This document shows positions 13,957-26,567 of a stretch of DNA of 64,000 bases, one piece after another. The translations under genes and the position numbers were made by a program. The stretch lies in assembly GCF_000006765.1 (NCBI RefSeq), contig NC_002516.2, one strand, 5' to 3'. Each line of letters opens with the position of its first letter. Position 1 is the stretch's first letter. Below the pieces are notes generated by a model. The model was not told the origin of the DNA. It was given only the letters and a program-made list of their open reading frames with translations, and searched no databases. The stretch comes from Pseudomonas aeruginosa PAO1 (GTDB lineage: Bacteria; Pseudomonadota; Gammaproteobacteria; Pseudomonadales; Pseudomonadaceae).

Positions 13957-15432
13957 ATGCACAACGAGTCCCGCCCTGAAGCCCCCTTGCGGGTGCTGGT
14001 GGTCGGCGCCGGCTTCGCCGGTCTCGGCTTGGCGATCCGCCTGCGACAGGCAGGCATCGACGATTATCTGGTCCTGGAAAAGGCCGCCGATGTCGGCGGT
14101 TGCTGGCGGGAAAACCGCTACCCGGGCGCCGCCTGCGACGTCCCCTCGCATCTCTATTCGTTTTCCTTCGAGCCGAAGGCCGACTGGTCGCGCAAGTTCG
14201 CCCCGCAGGCGGAAATCCTCGACTACCTGCGGCATTGCGCGGACAAGTACCGTCTGCGCGAGAAGATCCGTTTCCACTGCGAGGTGGAGGAGGCCCGTTT
14301 CGACGCCGGCAGCGGCGAATGGCAGGTGCGCTGCGCCGATGGCCAGACGCTGCGCGCACGGGCCCTGGTCTGCGCCACCGGCCAGTTGAGCCGGCCGCTG
14401 CTGCCGCGCCTGCCCGGCCTGGAGCGCTTCCAGGGTCCGGCGTTCCACTCGGCGAACTGGGACGCCGAGGTCGAGCTGGCCGGCAAGCGGGTCGCGGTGA
14501 TCGGCACCGGAGCCAGCGCCATCCAGTTCGTCCCGCGGATCGCCCCGCAGGTGCAACGCCTGTCGCTGTTCCAGCGCAGCGCGCCTTACGTGATCGCCAA
14601 GCCGGACCGCACCTACGCCGACTGGGAACGCCGCCTGAAGGCGCGCTGGCCGTGGCTGCAACGCCTGGATCGGGGGCTCAAGTACCTGCACCACGAATCG
14701 CGGATGCTCGCCTTCGCGACCTTCCCGGCGCTGATGAAGGTGATGCGGCTGAGCTTCCATCGTCACCTGCACCGGCAGATCGCCGATCCGCAACTGCGCG
14801 CGCGGCTGGTTCCCGACTACCCGCTGGGTTGCAAGCGCATCCTGATCAGCAACGACTATTACCCGGCGCTGGCCAGGAGCAATGTCGAACTGGTCGACAC
14901 GGGCATTCGCGAAGTCACCGAAGACGCCGTGGTCGGCCGTGACGGCCGCCGGCACGAGGTCGACGCGATCATCTTCGGTACCGGCTTCGCCGCCACCGAG
15001 TTCCTCGCCCCGATGCGCATCCTCGGCCTCGACGGACGCGACCTGCGGCAGGCCTGGGCGGATGGCGCGGAAGCCTACAAGGGCATCAGCGTCAGCGGCT
15101 TCCCCAACCTGTTCATCCTTTACGGGCCGAACACCAACCTCGGCCACAACTCCATCGTCTACATGCTGGAAAGCCAGTTCCCCTACGTGCTCGGCTGCCT
15201 GCGCCAGCTCCAGGAGCAGGGCTTGCGCTACCTCGACGTGAAGCCCGAGGTCCAGCGGCGCTTCAACCTGGAGGTGCAACAGGGGTTGCGCCATACCGTC
15301 TGGGAGCGTGGCTGCGACAGCTGGTACAAGACTGCCGCCGGCAAGAACACCAACAACTGGCCGGGCTACACCTTCGTCTATCGCTGGCGTACGCGCCGGC
15401 CGGAGCTTGCCGACTATGACCTGGCCCGCTGA
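13957..15432 (+). CDS. Baeyer-Villiger-type flavin monooxygenase
   Basis: GAGFAG, GGCW..NRYPG, fingerprint FQGPAFHSANW (FxGxxxHxxxW), GTGASA. Confidence 0.92.
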   Translation: MHNESRPEAPLRVLVVGAGFAGLGLAIRLRQAGIDDYLVLEKAADVGGCWRENRYPGAACDVPSHLYSFSFEPKADWSRKFAPQAEILDYLRHCADKYRLREKIRFHCEVEEARFDAGSGEWQVRCADGQTLRARALVCATGQLSRPLLPRLPGLERFQGPAFHSANWDAEVELAGKRVAVIGTGASAIQFVPRIAPQVQRLSLFQRSAPYVIAKPDRTYADWERRLKARWPWLQRLDRGLKYLHHESRMLAFATFPALMKVMRLSFHRHLHRQIADPQLRARLVPDYPLGCKRILISNDYYPALARSNVELVDTGIREVTEDAVVGRDGRRHEVDAIIFGTGFAATEFLAPMRILGLDGRDLRQAWADGAEAYKGISVSGFPNLFILYGPNTNLGHNSIVYMLESQFPYVLGCLRQLQEQGLRYLDVKPEVQRRFNLEVQQGLRHTVWERGCDSWYKTAAGKNTNNWPGYTFVYRWRTRRPELADYDLAR

Positions 15433-15442
15433 AGCGCCCCTG

Positions 15443-16372
15443 ATGTCGCCGCCGCAACGCCTGCGCGCCGGTCTCCTGCGCGGCTGCCTGCGCCTGTTGT
15501 TCCGCGGGCTGGTCCGTCCGCCCATGCCAGTGGCGCTGCAACGCGGCGTGTTGCGCGGGCTGAGCCTGGCGACGCTGGGCGCCGGCGGCGTCGTCCGCGA
15601 GCGCCGCAGCCTCGCCGGCGTGCCCTGCGAGTGGTTGCGGCCGCGCGGGGTGGAGGCGCGGCGCCGGGTGCTCTACCTGCACGGCGGCGCCTACCTGATC
15701 GGCTCGCCGGCGACCCACCGGGCGATCACCACGCACCTGGCCCGGCGTTGCGCCGCCGAGGTCTGCGCGGTGGACTACCGGCGCGCCCCGGAACATCCGT
15801 TCCCCGCCGCCCGCGACGACGCCCTGGCGGTCTACCTGGCATTGCTGGAGGCCGGCCATTCGCCGCGCCGGCTGCTGCTCGCCGGCGACTCCGCGGGCGG
15901 CCACCTGGCGCTGTCCCTGGCCCTGGAGCTGAAGGCGCGCGGCTTGCCGTTGCCGGCCGGGTTGCTGCTGTTCTCGCCCTGGACCGACCTCGGCTGCCAG
16001 CGCCTGCACACGCCGGCGGCCGGCGACCCGCTGCTGTCGCGGGCCTGGCTGGAAAGCGCGGTGCGCCTGCTGCTGCCGGCCGACGCGGAGCCAGGCTCGG
16101 CCGCCTTGTCGCCGCTGCATGCCGACCTGGCGGGGCTGCCGCCGCTGCTGGTACAGGTCGGCGAGGACGAACTGCTGCGCGACGACAGCCTGCGCCTGGC
16201 GCAACGGGCCGGTGAGCAGGGCGTCGCGGTGCGATTGCAGCGCTACGCCGGTTGCTGGCACGTGTTCCAGGCTCATGCCGGCGTGTTGGCCAGCGCCGAC
16301 CGGGCGTTGGACGAGGCGGCCGCGTTCGTCGTCGAATGCAGCGCGGAGGGCGACAGGTGCAGAACATCCTGA
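15443..16372 (+). CDS. HSL-family esterase
   Basis: HGGAY, GDSAGG, SPWTDL, E-L-D and WHVFQ catalytic residues. Confidence 0.9.
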   Translation: MSPPQRLRAGLLRGCLRLLFRGLVRPPMPVALQRGVLRGLSLATLGAGGVVRERRSLAGVPCEWLRPRGVEARRRVLYLHGGAYLIGSPATHRAITTHLARRCAAEVCAVDYRRAPEHPFPAARDDALAVYLALLEAGHSPRRLLLAGDSAGGHLALSLALELKARGLPLPAGLLLFSPWTDLGCQRLHTPAAGDPLLSRAWLESAVRLLLPADAEPGSAALSPLHADLAGLPPLLVQVGEDELLRDDSLRLAQRAGEQGVAVRLQRYAGCWHVFQAHAGVLASADRALDEAAAFVVECSAEGDRCRTS

Positions 16373-17112
16373 TCAGTGGTGCCGCTTCCGGAATCGGCGC
16401 CGCCAGCGCGCGGCTGTTCCACCGCCGGGGCTGGCGGGTCGGTTTGCTGGACATCGATGCCGAGGCGTTGCGCGGCTTGGCCGCGCAACTGCCGGGCGCC
16501 TGGCACCGCGCCGTGGACGTCAGCGAGCCCGACGCGGTCGGCGAGGCGCTTGCGCAGTTCTGTGCCGATGGCCGCCTGCGCCTGCTGTTCAACTGCGCCG
16601 GCGTCCTGCGTTTCGGCCGCTTCGAAGAGGTCGCCCTGGAGGACCACGCGCGGTTGCTGGCGATCAACCTGCATGGCGTCCTCAACTGCTGTCACGCGGC
16701 CTTTCCGTTCCTGCGCGCGACGCCGCAGGCGCAGGTGCTCAACATGGGCTCGGCATCGGGGCTGTATGGCGTACCGGAGATGGCCGTCTACTCGGCCTCG
16801 AAGTTCGCCGTGCGCGGGCTTACCGAGGCGCTGGAGCTGGAATGGCGCCGCCACGGTATTCGTGTGGCCGACCTGATGCCGCCGTTCGTTCGCACGCCGA
16901 TGGTCGCCGGGCAGGCCTACCAGCCGCCGGTGTTGCGTCGCCTGGGGCTGAGACTGGACGCCGAGGATATCGCCGAGGCGGCCTGGCGGCACGCGCACAG
17001 CCGGCGGGTACACCGGCCGGTGGGCGGGTTGTTCACGGCGCTGTACTGGGCTGGGCAGTTGTCTCCGCCGTGGGTGAACCGAGCGGTGATGGCGTGGTTG
17101 TCGCGGGGTTAG
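16357..17112 (+). CDS. Short-chain dehydrogenase/reductase
   Basis: GTG start; SGAASGIG, NCAG, YSASK. Confidence 0.9.
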   Translation: MQNILISGAASGIGAASARLFHRRGWRVGLLDIDAEALRGLAAQLPGAWHRAVDVSEPDAVGEALAQFCADGRLRLLFNCAGVLRFGRFEEVALEDHARLLAINLHGVLNCCHAAFPFLRATPQAQVLNMGSASGLYGVPEMAVYSASKFAVRGLTEALELEWRRHGIRVADLMPPFVRTPMVAGQAYQPPVLRRLGLRLDAEDIAEAAWRHAHSRRVHRPVGGLFTALYWAGQLSPPWVNRAVMAWLSRG

Positions 17113-17332
17113 GCTCTGCGCAGGATGGATAGAACGGATTAAAGCTTGGGTGGGTTTCACGCTGGATGGTCTAGCTGCTTTTCGTGGCTGCCTCGACTTC
17201 TTGTTTCGCCGTCCCAGGCGAGTGAAATCCATGGTAGATCTCGGACCATAGGTATGCCTTAGCCAGGCGCCGGTGCTTATCGCTACCGTTGAGCCCAAGA
17301 GTCCTCCTCGGGTGGGACCGTTGCCTCCCGTA

Positions 17333-18766
17333 TCAAGCACGCATCGTCAGCATCTCTTGGGGGCCTTCGCGTAGGAGCGCTGCCAGGACTGCGAAGCCGT
17401 CAGATAACGTATTCCCCCCTCCTGGGGAATTGCTGACGCTGATTCGAATGGCCTGGGGAAGCGTACCGCGGCCCGTACTAAAGGCCTCTGCGGTGGTGAC
17501 AAGATGCTGCTGTCCGCGCATGCCTTGCTCTATTTCGATGGCGCGCCAGGGGGCTGGCACTTCTACCCAGAAATGCGGACAGCATAGATGGCTGCGATAG
17601 GTCAGGCCCTGCAGCAGGTCCACAACCAGCGCTTGGCGACGCGCGATTTCCCCTCTCTGGTATTCGAGCAGTGCGCTTGCAGTACCGTCCTCGACCCATC
17701 GGCTCGCAATCTCGAGAACCAGTGGTGTCGCCATCCAGCACGAATTGCGAAGCGCTGCTGCCATGCGACTTACCATGGATGCAGGAGCATGAACGTATCC
17801 AACCCGCAATCCTGCAGCGACCGCCTTGCTCATGCCACCGATGAGGATGCCCCGCTCAGGCAGCAGATGGCAGAGAGGGGTGGGGCGTTCGGCCATCAAT
17901 ACAGCATGGGTTTCGTCCTCGATGACGATCAAGCCGTGCTCGCGGCAGATCTTCGCGATTTCCTTCCGCCTGGCGCCTGACATCACTGCAGTGGTCGGGT
18001 TCTGGATGGTGGGTGTGCAGTACAGGGCGGTGATCCTGTTCGTGCGGCAGGCCTCTTCGAGGGCGTCGGGCAGTAGCCCCTCTTCATCCATTTCCAAGCC
18101 GAGCACCTTGATGCCCAACAGTTGCGCGGCACTGATCAGCCCAGGATAGGAGAGCTGCTCCGTTACCAGGGTGTCGCCGGCGCGCAGCATGGCCATAAGC
18201 ACGACGAGCAGACCGTGTTGGCTGCCATTGACGCACAGAATCTGCTGGTGCTCCGCTTGAAACTCACCGTGAGACAGCCATGTTGCTCCCGCTTGCCGGT
18301 GTCGGAGCAGTCCTGTGTCGGGTGTGTAGAGCATTAACTCCTGCAGGAGCTCAGGGGCCGCACTCAATTGCTGAAGGCTGCGGGAAAGCAGTTCGGTCTC
18401 ATTGCCCGGAATATGCATATTCCGGCTCATGTCGTTGCACATCTCGGTGCTGTCTACGAAATTGCGAAAGCCCGCCTCCCGAGCACGTTCTCGACCGCGG
18501 TTGCGGACGAACGTACCGTCGCCGACCCGAGCCTCAACCAGCCCCATGCGCTCCAGCTCACCATAGGCCCGGCTCACCGTGCCCGCGGTCACACCGAGCT
18601 TGTCCGCGAGGATGCGATGTGGCGGCAGCTTGACTCCCTGCCGGAGAACCCCATTGCGAATAGATTCTTCGATGCCCTGGGCCAGCCGTTTGTACTTCAG
18701 GCCGGGCCCTTCTGGTAGGAAGAATCTGAAAATTGAATCGGTGTCAATATTTGCTTTGACCGGCAT
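17333..18766 (-). CDS. MocR/GabR-family regulator (GntR wHTH + PLP aminotransferase-like domain)
   Basis: KLPPHRILADKLGVTAGTVSRAYGEL HTH; EQLSYPG, IEDE, SKAVAAGLRVG. Confidence 0.92.
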   Translation of the reverse strand: MPVKANIDTDSIFRFFLPEGPGLKYKRLAQGIEESIRNGVLRQGVKLPPHRILADKLGVTAGTVSRAYGELERMGLVEARVGDGTFVRNRGRERAREAGFRNFVDSTEMCNDMSRNMHIPGNETELLSRSLQQLSAAPELLQELMLYTPDTGLLRHRQAGATWLSHGEFQAEHQQILCVNGSQHGLLVVLMAMLRAGDTLVTEQLSYPGLISAAQLLGIKVLGLEMDEEGLLPDALEEACRTNRITALYCTPTIQNPTTAVMSGARRKEIAKICREHGLIVIEDETHAVLMAERPTPLCHLLPERGILIGGMSKAVAAGLRVGYVHAPASMVSRMAAALRNSCWMATPLVLEIASRWVEDGTASALLEYQRGEIARRQALVVDLLQGLTYRSHLCCPHFWVEVPAPWRAIEIEQGMRGQQHLVTTAEAFSTGRGTLPQAIRISVSNSPGGGNTLSDGFAVLAALLREGPQEMLTMRA

Positions 18767-18799
18767 ATTTTCTCCGAATTAACCTCAAATAAAGAGGTT
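18732..18799. promoter_or_regulatory. Two inverted repeats in the divergent mocR/eamA control region (candidate operators)
   Basis: ATTGA-N7-TCAAT at 18732-18748 and AACCTC-N7-GAGGTT at 18781-18799, within an AT-rich tract. Confidence 0.45.
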
Positions 18800-18847
18800 T
18801 GATAAGCAATAAAGGGCGTCAATCAAAGAATAACATGGGGGAAAGAC

Positions 18848-19789
18848 GTGCAACTTATGTCAATTCAAGCTCTGACTATCAACAGGCGGCAGGTACGTGT
18901 GGCCAGCCTGGTGACCGCTGTTCTATTTCTAGTGGTGTGTATCAGCTGGGGGACTACCTGGCTCGGCATCAAGATCGCCGTGGAGAGCGTGCCGCCGCTA
19001 ACTGCCGCCGGATTGCGCTTTCTGATCGCATTTCCGCTTTTCCTGCTCTTTGCGCGGCTGCGCCACGAGACGATCTTTTTCCCGCGGCGACTCCTGGCCT
19101 TCTTCGTCTTCGTGACGCTCGGCTACTTCAGCGTGCCCTACTACCTGCTGAACTATGGCGAGCAATACGTCGCTTCAGGTCTTACCGCGCTGCTGTTCAG
19201 CAGCATGCCCGTGTTCATCCTGATCTTCTCCGCGATCTTCCTGCGCGAGCGCATCTACCTGTCGCAGATCCTTGGTATTGCGATTGGCTTCGGCAGCCTG
19301 TTCATGATCATCAGGTCTCAAGGGCTGCATCTGGACTACACGGAGTTGTTAGGCGTACTTGCCATCCTGCTCGCGGCGATCATGCACGCACTCAGCTACG
19401 TCATCACCAAAAGGCAAGGTGCTGACATCGGCGTGATCACCTTCAATACGCTGCCCATTGGCATCGCCGGCTTGGGGCTGTTCATGGCCGGACTCGTGAT
19501 GGAACACCCGAACCTGTCTGCCGTCACAAGCCGATCTTGGGCTGCCCTGATCTATCTCGGTCTGGTGGCATCAGTCGGGGGATTCATCGTGTACTTCTTC
19601 CTGCTCAAGCGTTTGAGTCCCGTTGTGCTGTCGTTTGTCTTCATCATTTTCCCGGTGTTCGCCGTGATCATCGGCGCCTGGTACGAAGGGGTTGCCATCT
19701 CTCGCGAGTTGATTGGCTTCACCGTGCTCCTATTGGCTGGATTTGCCATCACCAAGCTTCCCATCGAGAAGCTGCTCGGCAGGAGGTGA
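18848..19789 (+). CDS. EamA/DMT-family exporter
   Basis: 10 TM segments; WGTTWLGIK, LNYGEQYVASGL, FPVFAVIIG; alternative start 18857. Confidence 0.88.
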   Translation: MQLMSIQALTINRRQVRVASLVTAVLFLVVCISWGTTWLGIKIAVESVPPLTAAGLRFLIAFPLFLLFARLRHETIFFPRRLLAFFVFVTLGYFSVPYYLLNYGEQYVASGLTALLFSSMPVFILIFSAIFLRERIYLSQILGIAIGFGSLFMIIRSQGLHLDYTELLGVLAILLAAIMHALSYVITKRQGADIGVITFNTLPIGIAGLGLFMAGLVMEHPNLSAVTSRSWAALIYLGLVASVGGFIVYFFLLKRLSPVVLSFVFIIFPVFAVIIGAWYEGVAISRELIGFTVLLLAGFAITKLPIEKLLGRR

Positions 19790-19790
19790 C

Positions 19791-20249
19791 ATGAATACGA
19801 ACGTGTTGACCGAGCATGCATTGAGCGTGATCTACAGACACGCCTGCAGGACCTATCCAAGGGAATGCTGCGGATTCGTTCTCGCCGATGCAAAAGTGAA
19901 AGAGGGTACGAACATCCAGGATGAACTGCACATGGCTGACCCCCGGAGGTACCCACGCACGGCCGCCAACGGGTACACGTTTTCCGTGACGGATACCGTA
20001 TTCCTCAACAGCAGCTTCAAGACGTGCAGCCCGGTATCCGTCATCTACCACTCCCACCCGGACGTCGGTGCCTACTTCAGCCGGGAGGATATCGACAAGG
20101 CATTGTATGCCGGGGAGCCAATGCTGCCGGTCGACTACCTGGTTGTTGATGTGGCCGCCGGCAACGTTCGCGGCGCAAAACTGTTTGCCTGGCGCAACGG
20201 ACGCTTTGAATGCACACGAGAGTTCGGGCCATCGAGCCAGGACGAGTAG
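19791..20249 (+). CDS. JAB/MPN+ (Mov34, Mec+-like) Zn metalloprotease
   Basis: YPRECCG glutamate and complete JAMM motif H-S-H-x7-S-x2-D (HSHPDVGAYFSRED); AGGAGG RBS. Confidence 0.9.
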   Translation: MNTNVLTEHALSVIYRHACRTYPRECCGFVLADAKVKEGTNIQDELHMADPRRYPRTAANGYTFSVTDTVFLNSSFKTCSPVSVIYHSHPDVGAYFSREDIDKALYAGEPMLPVDYLVVDVAAGNVRGAKLFAWRNGRFECTREFGPSSQDE

Positions 20250-20271
20250 ACATCTGGCAAGGAGCTGAAAA

Positions 20272-21690
20272 GTGAAGACGGTAATTTTTCCGGAAGTACT
20301 GGTACGGGCCGCCCAACTGGAAGGCGGGCGCCTGGAGGGAGCGGGCTTGACGGTTGGCGAGCTGCTGGCAGGCCTTGCCAGGAAGCATCCTTCATTACTC
20401 GGGCACCTGTATTACGAAAACGGTCAATTGAAAGAACACTTCCTGCTGACCCACAAAGGTTCGCTAGTCAATCTGGATGGCGAGCTTTCCGATGGAGATG
20501 AAGTCGAAGTCATGCTCGCGACATCTGGCGGTTCTGGCGTTGAAGCGTTGAGCGACGAAGAAGTTCAACGCTACGTTCGCCACATCACGTTGCCAGGCGT
20601 TGGCAGGGAAGGCCAGCAGCGCCTGAAGCAGGCCAGGGTGCTGATAATCGGAACGGGCGGCCTGGGTTCGCCCGCTTGCCTTTATCTGGCCGCAGCAGGA
20701 GTGGGCACCATCGGGCTGGTTGACTTTGACGTGGTGGAGTCGAGCAATCTCCAGCGCCAGGTCGTCCATGGCTATAGCACGCTCGGTATGCCGAAGGTTG
20801 AGTCCGCCCAGCGCCGGATGCAGGACCTGAACCCCTACATTGAAGTCGTAACCCACCGTTACGCCATCGACGCGGACAATGCGCAGTCACTGATTCAGAG
20901 CTATGACCTGGTATTGGATGGCACCGACAACTTCGCCACACGTTACTTGGTCAACGCGGTTTGCGCCAAGCTCGGAAAACCACTCGTCTTTGGCGCGATC
21001 TATCGGTTCGAAGGTCAGGTCAGCGTCTTCAATCTGGAGGGAGGCCCCTGCTACCAATGTCTCTTCCCGAACAATCCCCCGCCTGAGATGGCTCCAAGCT
21101 GTAACGCAGGGGGAGTTATTGGTGTGCTGCCTGGAGTGATTGGCCTGCTGCAGGCAACCGAGGCGGTGAAGGCCCTCGTCGGCCTGGGCAAGTCCCTATC
21201 AGGCAGACTTCTTCGATTCGACGCGCTGCTCATGCACTTCAATGAAGTGAAGTTCAATCGGCGCGACGATTGTCCGGCCTGCGGCAAAACCGCTGCAGAG
21301 AATCCCCGCCACTGGAGGGAGGGATTGCTCTGCCAGGCAAGCGCGGCACCGTCGCAACGACTCGACGACGATCGCTATATCGATCCCGGCTGCCTGTTGC
21401 AGTTGATGAAATCCAACAGCGAAAACTATGCCCTTCTGGATGTACGCGACGCGGGCGAGCTCGAAGTGTGCCAGTTGCCGGGGATCGTCCACGTTCCCTT
21501 GAACGAACTCGCCAGCCATTTCGCCAATCTCGACTTCAGTAAGCGCTACATCCTCGTGTGCTACGCCGGCACTCGTGCCGAACGCGCGGCCATACAGCTC
21601 ATGGGGGCAGGGTTCTCCAACGTCCAAGTGCTCGATGGCGGCATGAAGCGATGGGCGAAAGAGATAGAGCAGCACATGCCGATGTACTGA
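20272..21690 (+). CDS. Fusion of MoaD/ThiS/CysO-like ubiquitin-fold sulfur carrier + E1-like adenylyltransferase + rhodanese (MoeZ-like)
   Basis: N-terminal ~87 aa beta-grasp-like domain ending TSGG; GTGGLG, SNLQRQ, DGTDN, CYQC/CPAC Zn pairs, PSC; rhodanese LDVR...CYAGTRA. Confidence 0.88.
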   Translation: MKTVIFPEVLVRAAQLEGGRLEGAGLTVGELLAGLARKHPSLLGHLYYENGQLKEHFLLTHKGSLVNLDGELSDGDEVEVMLATSGGSGVEALSDEEVQRYVRHITLPGVGREGQQRLKQARVLIIGTGGLGSPACLYLAAAGVGTIGLVDFDVVESSNLQRQVVHGYSTLGMPKVESAQRRMQDLNPYIEVVTHRYAIDADNAQSLIQSYDLVLDGTDNFATRYLVNAVCAKLGKPLVFGAIYRFEGQVSVFNLEGGPCYQCLFPNNPPPEMAPSCNAGGVIGVLPGVIGLLQATEAVKALVGLGKSLSGRLLRFDALLMHFNEVKFNRRDDCPACGKTAAENPRHWREGLLCQASAAPSQRLDDDRYIDPGCLLQLMKSNSENYALLDVRDAGELEVCQLPGIVHVPLNELASHFANLDFSKRYILVCYAGTRAERAAIQLMGAGFSNVQVLDGGMKRWAKEIEQHMPMY

Positions 21691-21708
21691 ACCATAGGCA
21701 GGGAAAGC

Positions 21709-22626
21709 ATGATCTACGATTCGCTACTCGATTTAATTGGCGGGACGCCGGTGATACGGCTGAGCAAATTGTCTGCTCGCCTGGGGGTGAGCGTATTCGC
21801 CAAGCTGGAATCCTTCAATCCAGGAGGAAGTCATAAGGCGCGTATCGCGCTCTGGATGATTCTGGATGCCGAACGCAAAGGAATCCTGGTGCGCGGGAAA
21901 GGGCAGACCATTCTCGAGCCGAGCGGGGGAAATACGGGGATTGGACTGGCAATGGCGGGGAACATCCTGGGGTACCGCGTGTCCCTGGTGGTTCCCGACA
22001 ACTACAGCCCTGACAAGAGACAATTGCTCGAGCTGTATGGCGCTCACGTCGTGCTGTCGGATAGCAGAAAAGGGAACAACTCGCATGGCGAGCTGGCAAT
22101 CCAGATACTGCTGGAACATCCGGAGTTCGTCATGCTCAACCAGCAGCGCAATCCAGCCAACCCGCAAGCCCATCGCGAAGCTACAGCCCTGGAAATCCTG
22201 AGGGACTTTGCAGGCCAGCCACCCCCGGACTTCTTCTTCGCTGGCATTGGAACTGGTGGACATATCACGGGTGTTGGAGAGGTGCTGAGGAACCACTGGC
22301 CGGATATGGCCATCTATGGCGTGCAGCCAGAGCAGTGCGACTTGCTCGACGATAGGCACGCATCGCATGAGATTCAGGGACTTTCCATTGGTATCGTGCC
22401 GGAAGTCTGCAACCTCGGCATTGTTACTGGCATGGTCGGGGTGTCGAAATCTGCCTGCTTGTCGATGATCCGGGAAGTCCTGCAAAACGACTCTGTGAGC
22501 ATGGGGTTGTCCTCCGCAGCCAACCTGGTCGCGGTGCTGAACATGGCATCTGCCATGCCGTCAGGCGCTCGTGTACTGACGATGATCTACGATGGCGTCG
22601 AGTCATACATGGACGCTTTTCGATGA
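21709..22626 (+). CDS. PLP-dependent cysteine synthase family enzyme (CysM-like, divergent)
   Basis: AKLESFNPGGSHKAR PLP-Lys, GNTG, GIGTGG, RQLLELYGA. Confidence 0.88.
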   Translation: MIYDSLLDLIGGTPVIRLSKLSARLGVSVFAKLESFNPGGSHKARIALWMILDAERKGILVRGKGQTILEPSGGNTGIGLAMAGNILGYRVSLVVPDNYSPDKRQLLELYGAHVVLSDSRKGNNSHGELAIQILLEHPEFVMLNQQRNPANPQAHREATALEILRDFAGQPPPDFFFAGIGTGGHITGVGEVLRNHWPDMAIYGVQPEQCDLLDDRHASHEIQGLSIGIVPEVCNLGIVTGMVGVSKSACLSMIREVLQNDSVSMGLSSAANLVAVLNMASAMPSGARVLTMIYDGVESYMDAFR

Positions 22627-22659
22627 AGTTGTAGAGCAGAGCACGGCGATAACGCTTGC

Positions 22660-23403
22660 ATGGTCGAAATGAGGTCGCATGCGATGGACAAACTGGTAGG
22701 TAATCTGATGCGCGCGGCATTGATGGAGTGCTGCTCACCCCAACTGGTGGAGCGGATAGTCGCTCATTCGATGTTCGAAGAAGCCAGACGTTGGTGCGAG
22801 GAAGACCTGCAGGCATTCGCCAGCAAGGATCCAGCCGCACAGGGACGGACATCCGACATTGCGTTTGGCTACAGCTCGTTCAAGGCAGTGCTGCACTACC
22901 GGCTTTCCCACATGCTGTGTCTGCGAAGCACATCTGAAGGCGATCCTGAGAGAGCGTTGGAGGCTACCGCGCTCCTGGTCTCCTCTCGTGGAAAGCTCCT
23001 GTCGGGCGCGGAAATCCACCCAAGATGCAAGATTGGCAGTCGATTCATCCTGGACCATGGGCATGGCACGGTCATTGGCGAGACAGCGGTAATCGGTGAT
23101 GACTGTTACATCCTCGGAGGTGTGGTATTGGGGGCAACTGGCATATCGGCTAATCCCGCCGGTAAGCGTCACCCCACCATAGGGAGCCGCGTCCAAATCG
23201 GGGCCTTCACGCGTGTACTGGGTGACATCGCTATCGGCGACGATGTGTTTGTCGGTCCGCATTGTGTCATCAAGGACGACATCCCTGTCGGTTCAGTCGT
23301 AACCCTGCGTTCTGAACTACAGGTCATCCGAGGCCCCCACATAGTTCAGCAACTACAGCCGGCAGCCACGCAGACCCAAATTCAACCAATGGAGGCATCA
23401 TGA
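22660..23403 (+). CDS. Serine O-acetyltransferase-like hexapeptide acyltransferase
   Basis: AEIHPRCKIG, DHGHGTVIGETAVIG, KRHPTIG left-handed beta-helix motifs. Confidence 0.85.
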   Translation: MVEMRSHAMDKLVGNLMRAALMECCSPQLVERIVAHSMFEEARRWCEEDLQAFASKDPAAQGRTSDIAFGYSSFKAVLHYRLSHMLCLRSTSEGDPERALEATALLVSSRGKLLSGAEIHPRCKIGSRFILDHGHGTVIGETAVIGDDCYILGGVVLGATGISANPAGKRHPTIGSRVQIGAFTRVLGDIAIGDDVFVGPHCVIKDDIPVGSVVTLRSELQVIRGPHIVQQLQPAATQTQIQPMEAS

Positions 23404-24134
23404 CGCAGACCGCCTCCCTTTTTCTCCAGGACTCCTACCGGGAAGAGTGTTTGGCGAGAATCACCGATGTCGTTGAAGATGGCCTGCTGCTCGACCAGAC
23501 CGTTTTCTATCCCCAGGGGGGTGGCCAGGCTGGAGACAGTGGTTGGCTGACGCTGGCTGATGGCACGCGGCTCCGGATCGCCGATACACGCAAGGGGACA
23601 GAAGCAGGTGCTGGCAGGGATGCCATCCTGCATATCCCAGCTGAAGGCCAGGCAACCGTTCTCCGAGCAATGAAGCCTGGCGAGGTGGTTCTTGCGCAGA
23701 TCGATTGGGTGCGTCGTTACCGGCACATGCGACTGCATACCGCAGCGCACATGCTCTGTGCTGTCCTGCCCTATCCGGTCAATGGGTGCAGCATCACTGA
23801 TGAGCATGCGCGCCTGGACTTCGTGACGAGTGAACCGCTGTCCCGCGAGGCCATTGATAGCGCCTTGGCGGCAATGGTCGAGGCAGCACATCCGGTTTCG
23901 ATCGACACCATGAGCGACGATGCACTGCGGGCTAGGCCAGATCTGGTGCGCACCATGAGTGTCCAACCTCCGATGGGCGCCGGGCAGGTTCGGTTGGTGA
24001 GTATTAAAGACACCGACCTGCAGCCTTGCGGTGGAACCCATGTGGCGAATACCGAAGAAGTTGGGGTGGTGCGCGTTTCCAAGATGGAGAAGAAATCAGC
24101 GCGCACCCGTAGGGTGGTACTGGTACTGGGTTGA
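23400..24134 (+). CDS. AlaX (AlaXp-M) stand-alone alanyl-tRNA editing protein
   Basis: LDQTVFYPQGGGQAGD, MRLHTAAH (HxxxH) and QPCGGTH (CxxxH) Zn motifs; ATGA overlap. Confidence 0.9.
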   Translation: MTQTASLFLQDSYREECLARITDVVEDGLLLDQTVFYPQGGGQAGDSGWLTLADGTRLRIADTRKGTEAGAGRDAILHIPAEGQATVLRAMKPGEVVLAQIDWVRRYRHMRLHTAAHMLCAVLPYPVNGCSITDEHARLDFVTSEPLSREAIDSALAAMVEAAHPVSIDTMSDDALRARPDLVRTMSVQPPMGAGQVRLVSIKDTDLQPCGGTHVANTEEVGVVRVSKMEKKSARTRRVVLVLG

Positions 24135-24225
24135 GCGACTACCGTCGACATGGCCGTCGGTTTCCCATTCTACGCCACAGGTCACCCTCGCCACGCCCGG
24201 CAGCTCCATGCAATGCCAGAGGGCC

Positions 24226-24624
24226 TCAGGCCGGCAACAACGGCCGACAGGCTTCGACGAAGCGCCGGCAGGCACCCGCACATTCGCGCTCCAGCGGCTC
24301 GTCGCCATCGCAACGCTCGGCGCATGCCAGGGCATAGCGCGCCGCCAGCTCGCAGGCGGCCGGCGCCCATGGGCTGCGGCGCTCCAGCAGTAGGGCGGCG
24401 AGGCGGCAGAGGTCGGCGCAGTCGCCGGCGTGCTGGCGTTGTTCCCTGCTGGACTCGGTGCAGAGCGCCAGGTAGCGCTCGCACGCGCGGATGCAGGCCT
24501 GGGCTGCGAGCCGGCAGCGCTCTTCCGGCGCCTGGGCGGCGGCACCGCCGAGCAGGGCGTCGGCGTCGGTTTCCAGCAGGGAACCGGGGTCTTCGTTTCC
24601 GGGATCGTTGATGGCGCGGGTCAT
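24226..24624 (-). CDS. Cys-rich four-helix-bundle protein (DUF326 / Csp3-like copper storage)
   Basis: Repeated CxxxC and CxxC motifs in helical sequence; AGGAGG RBS. Confidence 0.7.
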   Translation of the reverse strand: MTRAINDPGNEDPGSLLETDADALLGGAAAQAPEERCRLAAQACIRACERYLALCTESSREQRQHAGDCADLCRLAALLLERRSPWAPAACELAARYALACAERCDGDEPLERECAGACRRFVEACRPLLPA

Positions 24625-24794: not shown

Positions 24795-26567
24795 ATGTCC
24801 AGCACGGTTGCCGATCAATTGCTCGAACGCTTGAGCCAGTGGGGGGTGAAGCGCGTCTTCGGCTACCCCGGCGATGGCATCAACGGGATCATGGGCGCCA
24901 TGGGCCGGCGCGCCGAGGCATTCGACTATATCCGCGTGCGCCACGAGGAGATGGCGGCCTTCATGGCCGGCGCCCACGCCAAGTTCACCGGAGAGGTCGG
25001 GGTGTGCCTGGCCACCTCGGGGCCGGGCGCGATCCACCTGCTGAACGGGCTCTACGACGCGCGCATGGATCATCAGCCGGTGCTGGCCATCGTCGGCCAG
25101 CAGGCGGCTACCGCGCTGGGCAGCGACTACCAGCAGGAAGTCGATCTGCAGAGCTTGTTCAAGGACGTTTCCGCCTATGTCGAGACCGTGGTCAGCCCGG
25201 CACAACTGCTCCATGTGCTGGACCGAGCCCTGCGCGTGGCGGTCGGCGAGCGGCAGGTGGCGACGGTGATCGTGCCCAACGACGTGCAACAGATGGCGGC
25301 CCCGAAGCGCCAGCCCCACGAGCACGGCCACGTGATGTCGGCGGTGGGCTTCGTCCAGCCGCGACCCTACGCGCGCGACGCCGACCTGGAGGCCGCCGCG
25401 GCGATCCTCAATCGCGGCCGGCGCGTGGCGATCCTCGCCGGTGCCGGGGCCCTGGGCGCGCACCGGCAACTGGAAGCGGTCGCCGAGCGCCTGGCCGCCG
25501 GAGTGGCCAAGGCGCTCCTGGGCAAGGCGGCGGTTTCCGACGACCTGCCGTACGTGACCGGCTCCATCGGCCTGCTCGGCACCCGCGCCAGCAGCATGCT
25601 GATGGAGCATTGCGACACCCTGCTGATCGTCGGCAGCACTTTCCCCTACAGCGAGTTCCTACCCAAGGCCGGCCAGGCGCGGGCGGTGCAGATCGACCTG
25701 TATCCGCGCAACATCGGTATCCGCTATCCGATCGACCAGGCCTTGCTCGGCGATGCAGGGGAAACCCTGGAGCGCCTGCTGCCGCTGCTCGAGCAGAAAA
25801 AGCACGGTGCCTGGCGCCGCCGGGTCGAGCGGGCGGTGACGGCCAGTCGCGAGGAAGCCCGGCGCCAGGCCGAAGAGCCAGCCGACCCGATCAACCCGCA
25901 GCGGGTATTCCGTTCCTTGTCGGAGCAACTGCCGGACGATGCGATTCTCTGCGGCGACAGCGGCTCGCATACCAACTGGTACGCCCGCGACATCCGCATG
26001 CGCCCGGGCATGCTCGGCTCGCTGTCGGGCAAGCTGGCGACCATGGGCAGCGGCGTGCCCTACGCCATCGCCGCCAAGCTCGCCTATCCGCAGCGGCCGG
26101 TGGTGGCGATGGTCGGCGACGGCGCCATGCAGATGAACGGCAACGCCGAACTGGTCACCGTGCAGCAGTACTGGCAGCGCTGGGACTCGCCGACCTTCAT
26201 CGTGCTGGTGCTGAACAACGGCGATCTCAACCAGGTGACCTGGGAGCAGCGTGCCCTGGCCGGCGATCCGGAGTTCAGCCCGGCGCAGGAAGTGATCGAT
26301 TTCCCCTACGCGCGTTATGCGGACATGCTCGGCTTCAAGGGCATCCGCGTGGATCGCCCGGAGGACATCGACGCCGCCTGGGCCGAGGCCTTCGCCGCCG
26401 ACCGCCCGGTGCTGCTGGAGGTGGTCACCGACCCGAACGTGCCGCCGCTGCCGCCGCACATCAGTTTCGAGCAGGCCAAGCACCTGCTTGGCGCCATGCT
26501 GCAGGACGATCCCAAGCGCTGGGGGGTGATTCGCCAGAGCGCCCGGCAGGTCCTCGCGCGGCACTGA
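24795..26567 (+). CDS. Thiamine pyrophosphate-requiring enzyme (pyruvate oxidase/decarboxylase family)
   Basis: FGYPGDGIN, RHEE, TSGPGAIHLLNGLYDA, TPP motif GDGAMQM...NN. Confidence 0.92.
   Translation: MSSTVADQLLERLSQWGVKRVFGYPGDGINGIMGAMGRRAEAFDYIRVRHEEMAAFMAGAHAKFTGEVGVCLATSGPGAIHLLNGLYDARMDHQPVLAIVGQQAATALGSDYQQEVDLQSLFKDVSAYVETVVSPAQLLHVLDRALRVAVGERQVATVIVPNDVQQMAAPKRQPHEHGHVMSAVGFVQPRPYARDADLEAAAAILNRGRRVAILAGAGALGAHRQLEAVAERLAAGVAKALLGKAAVSDDLPYVTGSIGLLGTRASSMLMEHCDTLLIVGSTFPYSEFLPKAGQARAVQIDLYPRNIGIRYPIDQALLGDAGETLERLLPLLEQKKHGAWRRRVERAVTASREEARRQAEEPADPINPQRVFRSLSEQLPDDAILCGDSGSHTNWYARDIRMRPGMLGSLSGKLATMGSGVPYAIAAKLAYPQRPVVAMVGDGAMQMNGNAELVTVQQYWQRWDSPTFIVLVLNNGDLNQVTWEQRALAGDPEFSPAQEVIDFPYARYADMLGFKGIRVDRPEDIDAAWAEAFAADRPVLLEVVTDPNVPPLPPHISFEQAKHLLGAMLQDDPKRWGVIRQSARQVLARH

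Follow-up and report, generated by a model that had tools for sequence, protein, structure and literature searches.

In Pseudomonas aeruginosa PAO1, the gene for a free-standing alanyl-tRNA editing protein, AlaX (PA2106), is the last of a six-gene operon (PA2101-PA2106) in a stretch of 64,000 nucleotides (nt) of contig NC_002516.2; this whole stretch is called the window here. The gene directly upstream encodes a short homolog of serine O-acetyltransferase (SAT), and the linkage of the two is near-obligate, real, and general. Among 100 SAT loci that could be tested, 97 had an AlaX-like gene directly 3′ on the same strand. The set was pooled from metagenome and genome loci that were probed by SAT or CysK and had enough downstream DNA, 3 of which were first found via AlaX, and it corresponds to 31 SAT clusters at 85% identity. 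An original prediction for this DNA had proposed that AlaX confers self-resistance to a small product or intermediate of the operon. The reading we favor, with about even confidence, is that AlaX acts as a generic trans-editor of Ser-tRNA(Ala) that is co-induced with a serine-consuming, exporting module.

The linkage is equally apparent when counted by genome. Of 351 Pseudomonadaceae genomes, 28 contain operon-type CysK and 30 contain a free AlaX. All 28 operon-bearing genomes have AlaX, and only 2 genomes have AlaX without the operon. AlaX closes the operon in 26 of the 28, including the genome nearest to the window; in 2 others (G424 and G409), the operon stops at the SAT gene and AlaX is found elsewhere in the genome. 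In the window, the stop of the acyltransferase gene overlaps the start of AlaX by 4 nt (...atcATGAcg...), the coupling that had been noted earlier, and a stop/start overlap between the two genes recurs in several lineages. Chance adjacency or hitch-hiking of AlaX was considered and rejected on the 97/100 and 28/28 counts, and the earlier description of AlaX as the last gene of a biosynthetic operon is borne out.

The reverse dependence was not found. AlaX genes that stand alone are common for every AlaX type, and in Burkholderiales the majority of AlaX genes lie away from any cysteine genes. In a search keyed on AlaX′, the most divergent of the types described below, 4 to 5 of 9 genes adjoined an SAT or an MFS transporter gene. 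As AlaX often stands alone, while this SAT type almost never occurs without AlaX, it is the SAT module that needs AlaX, and not the reverse.

Sequence defects were seen at three loci. In G565 (L133:6290-6984), 1 of the 26 genomes in which AlaX ends the operon, AlaX is split into two frames, so that it may be a pseudogene or reflect an error in sequencing. At L216:4237-8809, the MoeZ gene is interrupted by a gap of about 1.2 kb and the SAT gene is not followed by AlaX; in G003 (L099), the reading frames of MoeZ and CysK are broken.

The AlaX open reading frame (ORF) translates without stops into 244 amino acids (aa). The protein consists of an N-terminal barrel with a GGGQ loop (residues 40-43) and an editing core, and is free-standing, without an aminoacylation domain. 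It matches the Pfam families tRNA_SAD (E 1.4e-12) and the C-terminal editing part (positions 472-549) of tRNA-synt_2c (E 8.7e-9). The GGGQ loop is invariant across homologs, as are the zinc motifs HTAAH (113-117) and CGGTH (210-214) across the homolog alignments, so that the intact HxxxH/CxxxH protein described in the original prediction is confirmed. The nearest solved relatives are 9IUW (E 5.4e-24), the alanyl-tRNA synthetase (AlaRS) 2ZZE (E 1.2e-22), and the AlaX-M 2E1B (E 7.9e-20). The two-part architecture, the HxxxH/CxxxH ligands, and a length of about 240 aa are shared with known AlaX-M/AlaXp trans-editors, such as AlaX-M of Pyrococcus horikoshii (PDB 2E1B) and human AlaX (PMC11260482). 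The latter source gives Ser-tRNA(Ala) as the main AlaX substrate, which is hydrolyzed predominantly, and by homology the window protein would act on Ser- (and Gly-) tRNA(Ala).

Genome-wide counts beside the window were made in G001, a near-identical genome and the nearest complete one. It encodes one AlaRS, with intact HSATH and CGGTH motifs, and the PA2106-type AlaX as its sole free AlaX. Had AlaX served self-resistance, a protective second copy of a target or guard would be expected beside a housekeeping copy; no such pair exists here. A complex prediction for SAT and AlaX returned a score of 0.00, which counts neither for nor against binding.

The AlaX proteins that occupy this slot belong to three lineages. 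Clade A is carried among the SAT-linked loci by the window, L162/L163, and L187. Clade B comprises the other Pseudomonadaceae operons, in which a long SAT (334-353 aa) is followed by an AlaX that is 39% to 45% identical to that of the window. The third lineage, AlaX′, was found at metagenome and Burkholderiales/Xanthomonadales loci and is 24% to 32% identical to the window AlaX; it has insertions and lacks a 20-residue segment of canonical AlaX-M. All three lineages retain the GGGQ loop, both zinc motifs (HxxxH and CGGTH in AlaX′), and several invariant arginines. The long clade-B SATs owe their length to a C-terminal extension of about 110 aa that has no Pfam match and is absent from the 247-aa SAT of the window.

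In the AlaX trees, clade A lies inside stand-alone Burkholderiaceae AlaX, with Shimodaira-Hasegawa-like approximate likelihood ratio test (SH-aLRT) support of 95 to 99, while in the SAT tree the clade-A SATs nest among AlaX′-partnered SATs (support 98). Forcing the canonical SAT-linked AlaX proteins, a group defined after the tree, into monophyly cost 242 log-likelihood units (approximately unbiased [AU] test, p 1e-16). The trees and the AU test thus indicate that, in this slot, a different AlaX type gave way to an ordinary, Burkholderiaceae-type AlaX-M. They also led us to reject divergence of a single ortholog as the explanation for the approximately 40% identity of the AlaX proteins of the other operons. 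No operon-type CysK was found in 401 sampled Burkholderiaceae genomes, suggesting that, among the genomes searched, the donor of the clade-A AlaX was not a whole-operon version.

The AlaX types also appear to exclude one another. Among the 401 Burkholderiaceae genomes, canonical AlaX-M was present in 0 of the 9 with AlaX′, against about 198 of the 392 others (Fisher p 0.0036); the count includes the unpublished genome G971, on which the result does not depend. Coexistence of AlaX′ with canonical AlaX, which would signal a special function, was looked for and not seen in any of the 9. Exclusion and lineage swapping together suggest that the AlaX types are interchangeable providers of one generic activity. 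One AlaX′ genome contains a further divergent AlaX-like ORF (G979:C23:42276-42902) of 264 aa, 36% identical to residues 29-242 of the window AlaX. In the reading we favor, AlaX would be a quality-control partner of the SAT-type module rather than a pathway enzyme.

The operon itself lies on a 6.9-kb island of low GC content that holds exactly the regulator gene and the six operon genes (Table 1). The operon genes fail a criterion based on GC content at third codon positions (GC3), which the flanking genes pass, and PMC9431628 lists PA14 orthologs for none of PA2100-PA2103. The island is a horizontally acquired module. Its gene order matches PA2100-PA2106 as given in PMC9866376 and PMC9431628, and cluster members are named P. 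aeruginosa. From EamA to AlaX, the genes form a same-strand array spaced by 1, 22, 18, and 33 nt ahead of the final 4-nt overlap. The gene caller was GC3-based and rough, so that the arguments presented here use only ORFs confirmed by tblastn or Pfam.

Upstream of the operon, across an 81-bp intergenic region (18767-18847), lies a divergent gene for a MocR-type regulator, PA2100, which is described in PMC9431628. Its best NCBIfam match is the MocR-like EhuR (452 bits versus a cutoff of 480), and homologs with 59% to 64% identity are found divergent beside the operon in 27 other genomes. The EamA exporter has weak NCBIfam matches to YedA and to an O-acetylserine/cysteine exporter, and is 69% to 78% identical across related operons. 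In PA2102, the stretch HSHPDVGAYFSRED matches the JAMM motif HxHx7SxxD. PA2103 combines ThiS (19-87), ThiF (101-335, E 5.8e-84), and Rhodanese (382-463, E 1.2e-14) domains; its NCBIfam MoeZ/MoeB matches are at about 395 to 430 bits, with the MoeZ model (394.8) below its equivalog cutoff of 647. The junction "(L/I)ATSGG" between ThiS and MoeZ is kept in 27 of 28 related operons, while the remaining alignment ends at "ATSG". As the ThiS domain ends in ...ATSGG but is fused to MoeZ, a free GG end would need proteolysis, and a cut by the JAMM peptidase at GG would be required. In G379 (L098:6852-8744), JAB peptidase, ThiS-like, ThiF, and rhodanese parts are encoded by one uninterrupted 630-aa ORF, in which even the protease is joined to the carrier and E1 that it presumably cuts apart.

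The remaining two enzymes are related to cysteine synthesis. PA2104 scores 271 bits against the NCBIfam model cysKM, below the cutoff of 344; its best solved relatives are cysteine synthases, and it is 31% to 35% identical to the other CysK/M paralogs of the nearest complete genome. PA2105 scores 141.2 bits against cysE and does not reach the equivalog cutoff of 210.65. It is 247 aa long, ends in ...IQPMEAS, and is 45% identical to housekeeping CysE. With solved SATs it has the stretches DPAA, IHP, DHG.G.VIGET, and KRHPT.G in common, which are residues invariant in the SAT alignment. It appears to represent a distinct short SAT subfamily. Besides the operon, the nearest complete genome encodes housekeeping CysK/M and CysE as well as a MoeB (53% identity), which argues that the operon is an accessory cysteine pathway, and not a secondary metabolite cluster.

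By gene content, then, the operon is predicted to be a cysteine pathway of the sulfur-carrier type, rather than an antimetabolite or secondary metabolite cluster. The chemistry of Ser/Cys-like size guessed in the original prediction agrees with the SAT homolog and the predicted route from serine via O-acetylserine to cysteine. The SAT would convert L-serine into O-acetylserine, and the presence of an SAT gene in the operon implies this intermediate rather than O-phosphoserine. The MoeZ-rhodanese part would charge the ThiS-like carrier, from whose thiocarboxylate the CysK-like enzyme would take the sulfur to turn O-acetylserine into cysteine. The JAMM peptidase would cut at the conserved GG, releasing and recycling the carrier, and EamA would export the product or an intermediate. 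When the module is switched on, a serine-type load open to mischarging by AlaRS would arise, and AlaX would clear tRNA(Ala). Serine is our best guess for the mischarged amino acid; we infer both the MocR inducer and all of the enzymatic steps.

AlaX was also found in modules of other composition. A compact four-gene cluster of SAT, AlaX′, an MFS transporter, and a CysK-like PALP, often with a divergent MocR gene, was detected on contigs of 45% to 64% GC, with Paraburkholderia, Herbaspirillum, Dyella, and Trinickia as named relatives. The PALP partners are 28% to 32% identical to the window PALP, and no curated family names this cluster. L187 has the order EamA-SAT-AlaX. G746 (L151:8863-12040), one of the genomes with AlaX and no operon, has a MocR gene divergent from EamA and a clade-B AlaX, without the JAMM, MoeZ, CysK, and SAT genes. 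In Burkholderia sp. Leaf177, a MocR gene is divergent from AlaX, the two being 64% and 63% identical to those of the window. In three Alphaproteobacteria, the MocR gene is divergent from a series of EamA, a PRK06110-type Ser/Thr dehydratase, and AlaX; four other loci have a CysK/CBS-like enzyme directly 5′ of AlaX. The common denominators are a regulator that senses pyridoxal phosphate (PLP), an amino acid exporter, a PLP or acetyl-CoA enzyme using serine or O-acetylserine, and AlaX. These shared serine-using parts, together with the documented activity of AlaX on Ser-tRNA(Ala), are the basis of the serine-load idea, the simplest one that would unify these modules. A broader proposal would be that the SAT-like and AlaX-like pair forms the core of an unrecognized, widespread, MocR-controlled module, with an exporter and a PLP enzyme that uses serine or O-acetylserine, which would tie tRNA proofreading to the metabolism of amino acids. 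It would serve either as an inducible defense against serine overflow or through action of AlaX′ on a new substrate (tRNA mischarged with O-acetylserine, cysteine, or another beta-substituted alanine that the module makes); we regard this as speculative and rather doubtful.

Published expression data are available for most of the operon. Induction of RpoH in PAO1 raised PA2101 4.3-fold, PA2102 3.8-fold, PA2103 3.3-fold, PA2104 3.2-fold, and PA2106 2.2-fold (PMC9866376, Table 5), and PA2100-PA2103 are induced by N-acetylcysteine (PMC9431628). In a listing of 24 RNA sequencing (RNA-seq) runs from nine studies, at least half of the sampled words of the window stretch were present in 23 runs. Contigs in two studies end at 24299 and 24306, about 170 nt past the AlaX stop, which may merely reflect the gap before the convergent gene. 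A consensus scan found no intrinsic terminator from the AlaX stop to 24565, the nearest plus-strand match being at 24566-24587, and the 200 nt 3′ of the AlaX stop fold no better than shuffled sequences (z 0.08).

Several observations weigh against generic Ser-tRNA(Ala) editing as the role of AlaX in a serine-to-cysteine module. Related genomes and loci are not independent samples, so that the raw counts inflate the number of independent events. An SAT that consumes serine should lower serine levels, and a raised risk of mischarging is therefore not obvious. The functions of the operon are predicted, and PA2104 and PA2105 appear only as candidates in PMC12800425 and PMC13256707; the former paper also has a cysK cysM double mutant that grows late. 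AlaXM is the top NCBIfam model for AlaX over its full length, but the score of 186.4 bits does not reach the cutoff of 300. With the same model, the clade-B operon AlaX scores 203 bits and AlaX′ 106 bits, and the window AlaX would belong to a bacterial branch outside the curated (archaeal-type) equivalog. The specificity of AlaX′ may differ, because its 20-residue segment is missing. Single RNA-seq contigs from several studies run unbroken from EamA through AlaX, but such contigs cannot prove a single transcript, as DNA carry-over is possible. Finally, at 18 Comamonadaceae loci (L024:9001-11917 and 17 others), DsbD lies no more than 5 nt 3′ of AlaX, and a TlpA-like gene (AhpC/TSA-Redoxin) often comes further 3′, a context that fits a theme of thiol or oxidative stress equally well.

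Self-resistance, as first proposed, would mean that SAT and the CysK-like enzyme make a small beta-substituted alanine (in this operon cysteine, a persulfide, or a thio-derivative), for which EamA or an MFS transporter provides export, and that AlaRS or another synthetase mischarges this product or O-acetylserine, which AlaX then clears from tRNA. The conserved co-occurrence of AlaX with biosynthetic genes across taxa agrees with this, and SAT, AlaX, exporter, PALP, and regulator do recur together in the manner of a make-and-export cassette. The specificity of AlaX′, a deep branch with insertions and a deletion, could be altered, the products may differ given the diversity of the PALP partners, and the window PALP also resembles O-ureidoserine synthase among the solved structures. 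On the other hand, AlaX is kept in modules that have no biosynthetic enzyme or have a dehydratase in its place, an ordinary AlaX of the stand-alone type replaced AlaX′ in the lineage of the window, and AlaX′ and canonical AlaX-M are mutually exclusive across genomes. There is moreover no duplicated target, with one intact AlaRS and one AlaX, and the predicted product is a normal proteinogenic amino acid. What stands of the earlier claim is protection against something small and Ser/Cys-like; resistance to a special toxic product is less well supported than generic editing, and we consider it unlikely.

Two further explanations were weighed. AlaX could act off-tRNA as a pathway hydrolase, in recycling of N- or O-acetylserine or on seryl or cysteinyl esters, perhaps in a complex with SAT. 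The near-universal adjacency, the stop/start overlaps in several lineages, the AlaXM scores under the curated cutoff, and the induction of the first operon genes by N-acetylcysteine, an analog of N-acetylserine, are compatible with such a role. Editing features are nevertheless kept in all three lineages (GGGQ, both zinc motifs, and the invariant arginines), the same AlaX types frequently stand alone far from any SAT, lineage swapping speaks for a generic activity, and hydrolysis of carrier-bound cysteine is already covered by the JAMM peptidase, which together make a hydrolase distinctly improbable. Alternatively, the island could supply and export cysteine under oxidative or proteotoxic stress, as was proposed for mycobacterial CysO, with AlaX backing up the editing by AlaRS when this stress impairs fidelity. 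The operon as a whole is raised by RpoH induction, the pathway includes a thiocarboxylate carrier and a cysteine-type exporter, and the Comamonadaceae loci place AlaX directly 5′ of DsbD and a TlpA-like thioredoxin, so that the trigger may be thiol stress. The Comamonadaceae synteny may, however, be a single inherited arrangement, the dehydratase variants are not obviously redox-linked, and the failure of AlaRS editing under oxidation that this explanation assumes is hypothetical. We give this explanation, which overlaps with serine-linked editing and differs from it only in the trigger, little credence.

Parts of this system have known counterparts. The operon resembles the Mec+-CysO-CysM system of Mycobacterium tuberculosis, together with MoeZ, in its putative ThiS-like GG carrier, MoeZ-type E1-rhodanese, JAMM hydrolase, and PLP enzyme of the CysK/M family. 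It differs in the fusion of the carrier to the MoeZ N-terminus, in having its own SAT, and in the additional exporter, MocR, and AlaX genes; its PALP is no closer to the M. tuberculosis CysM, which uses O-phosphoserine, than to ordinary CysK. An uncharacterized operon of ThiS/MoaD, E1-like, JAB, and cysteine synthase genes, with P. aeruginosa listed, is row 4c of Table 1 in Iyer, Burroughs, and Aravind 2006 (PMC1779556). The core of that row corresponds to PA2102-PA2104; the text contains neither "alanyl" nor "acetyltransferase", and it covers neither the SAT-AlaX pair nor the regulator-exporter-AlaX modules. An SAT gene is co-transcribed with translation genes in the gltX-cysE-cysS operon of Bacillus subtilis, which encodes glutamyl- and cysteinyl-tRNA synthetases next to CysE (cited in PMC13040420, reference 18). 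The partners there are synthetases that link cysteine supply to charging, whereas the partner in the window is a tRNA(Ala) editing hydrolase.

Antibiotic gene clusters can contain self-resistance paralogs of aminoacyl-tRNA synthetases, such as the seryl-tRNA synthetase copy in the albomycin cluster, which duplicate the drug target in an insensitive form. Like this gene, the window AlaX is a gene related to fidelity or a target inside a biosynthetic operon; unlike it, AlaX is not duplicated, is associated with no known toxic product, and is interchangeable with stand-alone types. Known AlaX genes have been treated as housekeeping fidelity factors, whereas the window AlaX is found on a strain-variable island, linked to a MocR gene, translationally coupled to SAT, and co-induced with a cysteine pathway. 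No relevant pairing of AlaX with cysteine synthase, serine acetyltransferase, O-acetylserine, EamA, or MocR was found in the searchable literature. Proteins like AlaX are familiar, but a regulated and near-obligate place for one within a module of serine-to-cysteine conversion and export does not seem to have been described, and the SAT-AlaX pattern suggests a so far unreported connection of serine/cysteine metabolism with the fidelity of translation.

Trans-editing factors are usually viewed as constitutive accessories; here, AlaX belongs to a metabolic operon that is both regulated and mobile. The combination of linkage, three swapped lineages, and exclusion suggests that the metabolic module cannot do without it, providing a concrete and testable case in which metabolism would create a mistranslation hazard that is insured against at the operon level. 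It also offers a function-level hypothesis for PA2100-PA2106, an uncharacterized island that varies among strains of an important pathogen. The SAT and cysteine synthase genes of this island were singled out in recent papers because they might serve as a back-up supply of cysteine. Its regulator, MdrR2, influences both efflux and sensitivity to phage.

Table 1. Coordinates of the island, its genes and neighbors in the window, and of related loci elsewhere.
Feature	Position	Strand	Basis or remark
Low-GC island with the regulator and six-gene operon	17300..24150		GC 0.56-0.60 vs flanks 0.68-0.74
MocR/GntR-aminotransferase-fold regulator (PA2100/MdrR2, by gene order)	17333..18766	-	Pfam GntR + Aminotran_1_2
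EamA/DMT-family exporter, first operon gene (PA2101)	18848..19789	+	Pfam EamA E 1.6e-42
JAMM/MPN+ metallopeptidase, Mec/QbsD-like (PA2102)	19791..20249	+	Pfam Prok-JAB E 5.3e-19
ThiS-like carrier ending GG, MoeZ-type E1 adenylyltransferase, rhodanese (PA2103)	20272..21690	+	Pfam
CysK/CysM-family PLP enzyme (PA2104)	21709..22626	+	Pfam PALP E 2e-71
Short SAT-like hexapeptide transferase (PA2105)	22660..23403	+	cysE homology, alignment to solved SATs
AlaX-M-type free-standing alanyl-tRNA editing protein (PA2106)	23400..24134	+	Pfam, NCBIfam, motifs, solved relatives, trees
Flavin monooxygenase-like gene	13957..15432		
Short-chain dehydrogenase/reductase (SDR)	16252..17112		
Cysteine-rich DUF326 protein	24226..24624	-	
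Thiamine pyrophosphate (TPP)-dependent enzyme	24795..26567	+	
SAT-AlaX′-MFS-PALP cluster	L168:7971-11563		also L157, L159, L160, L164-L195, L237, L240, L242, L243
Alphaproteobacterial dehydratase-AlaX loci	L056:233-4560, L061:5307-9696, L081:5231-9702		
Clade-B SATs, 334-353 aa	L096:8650-9660, L098:9652-10713, L099:9561-10595, L095:10088-11092		

The next gene 3′ of AlaX, convergent with it and outside the island, encodes the cysteine-rich DUF326 protein, and the TPP-dependent enzyme is encoded just past the island. The SDR gene and the flavin monooxygenase-like gene lie on the other flank.

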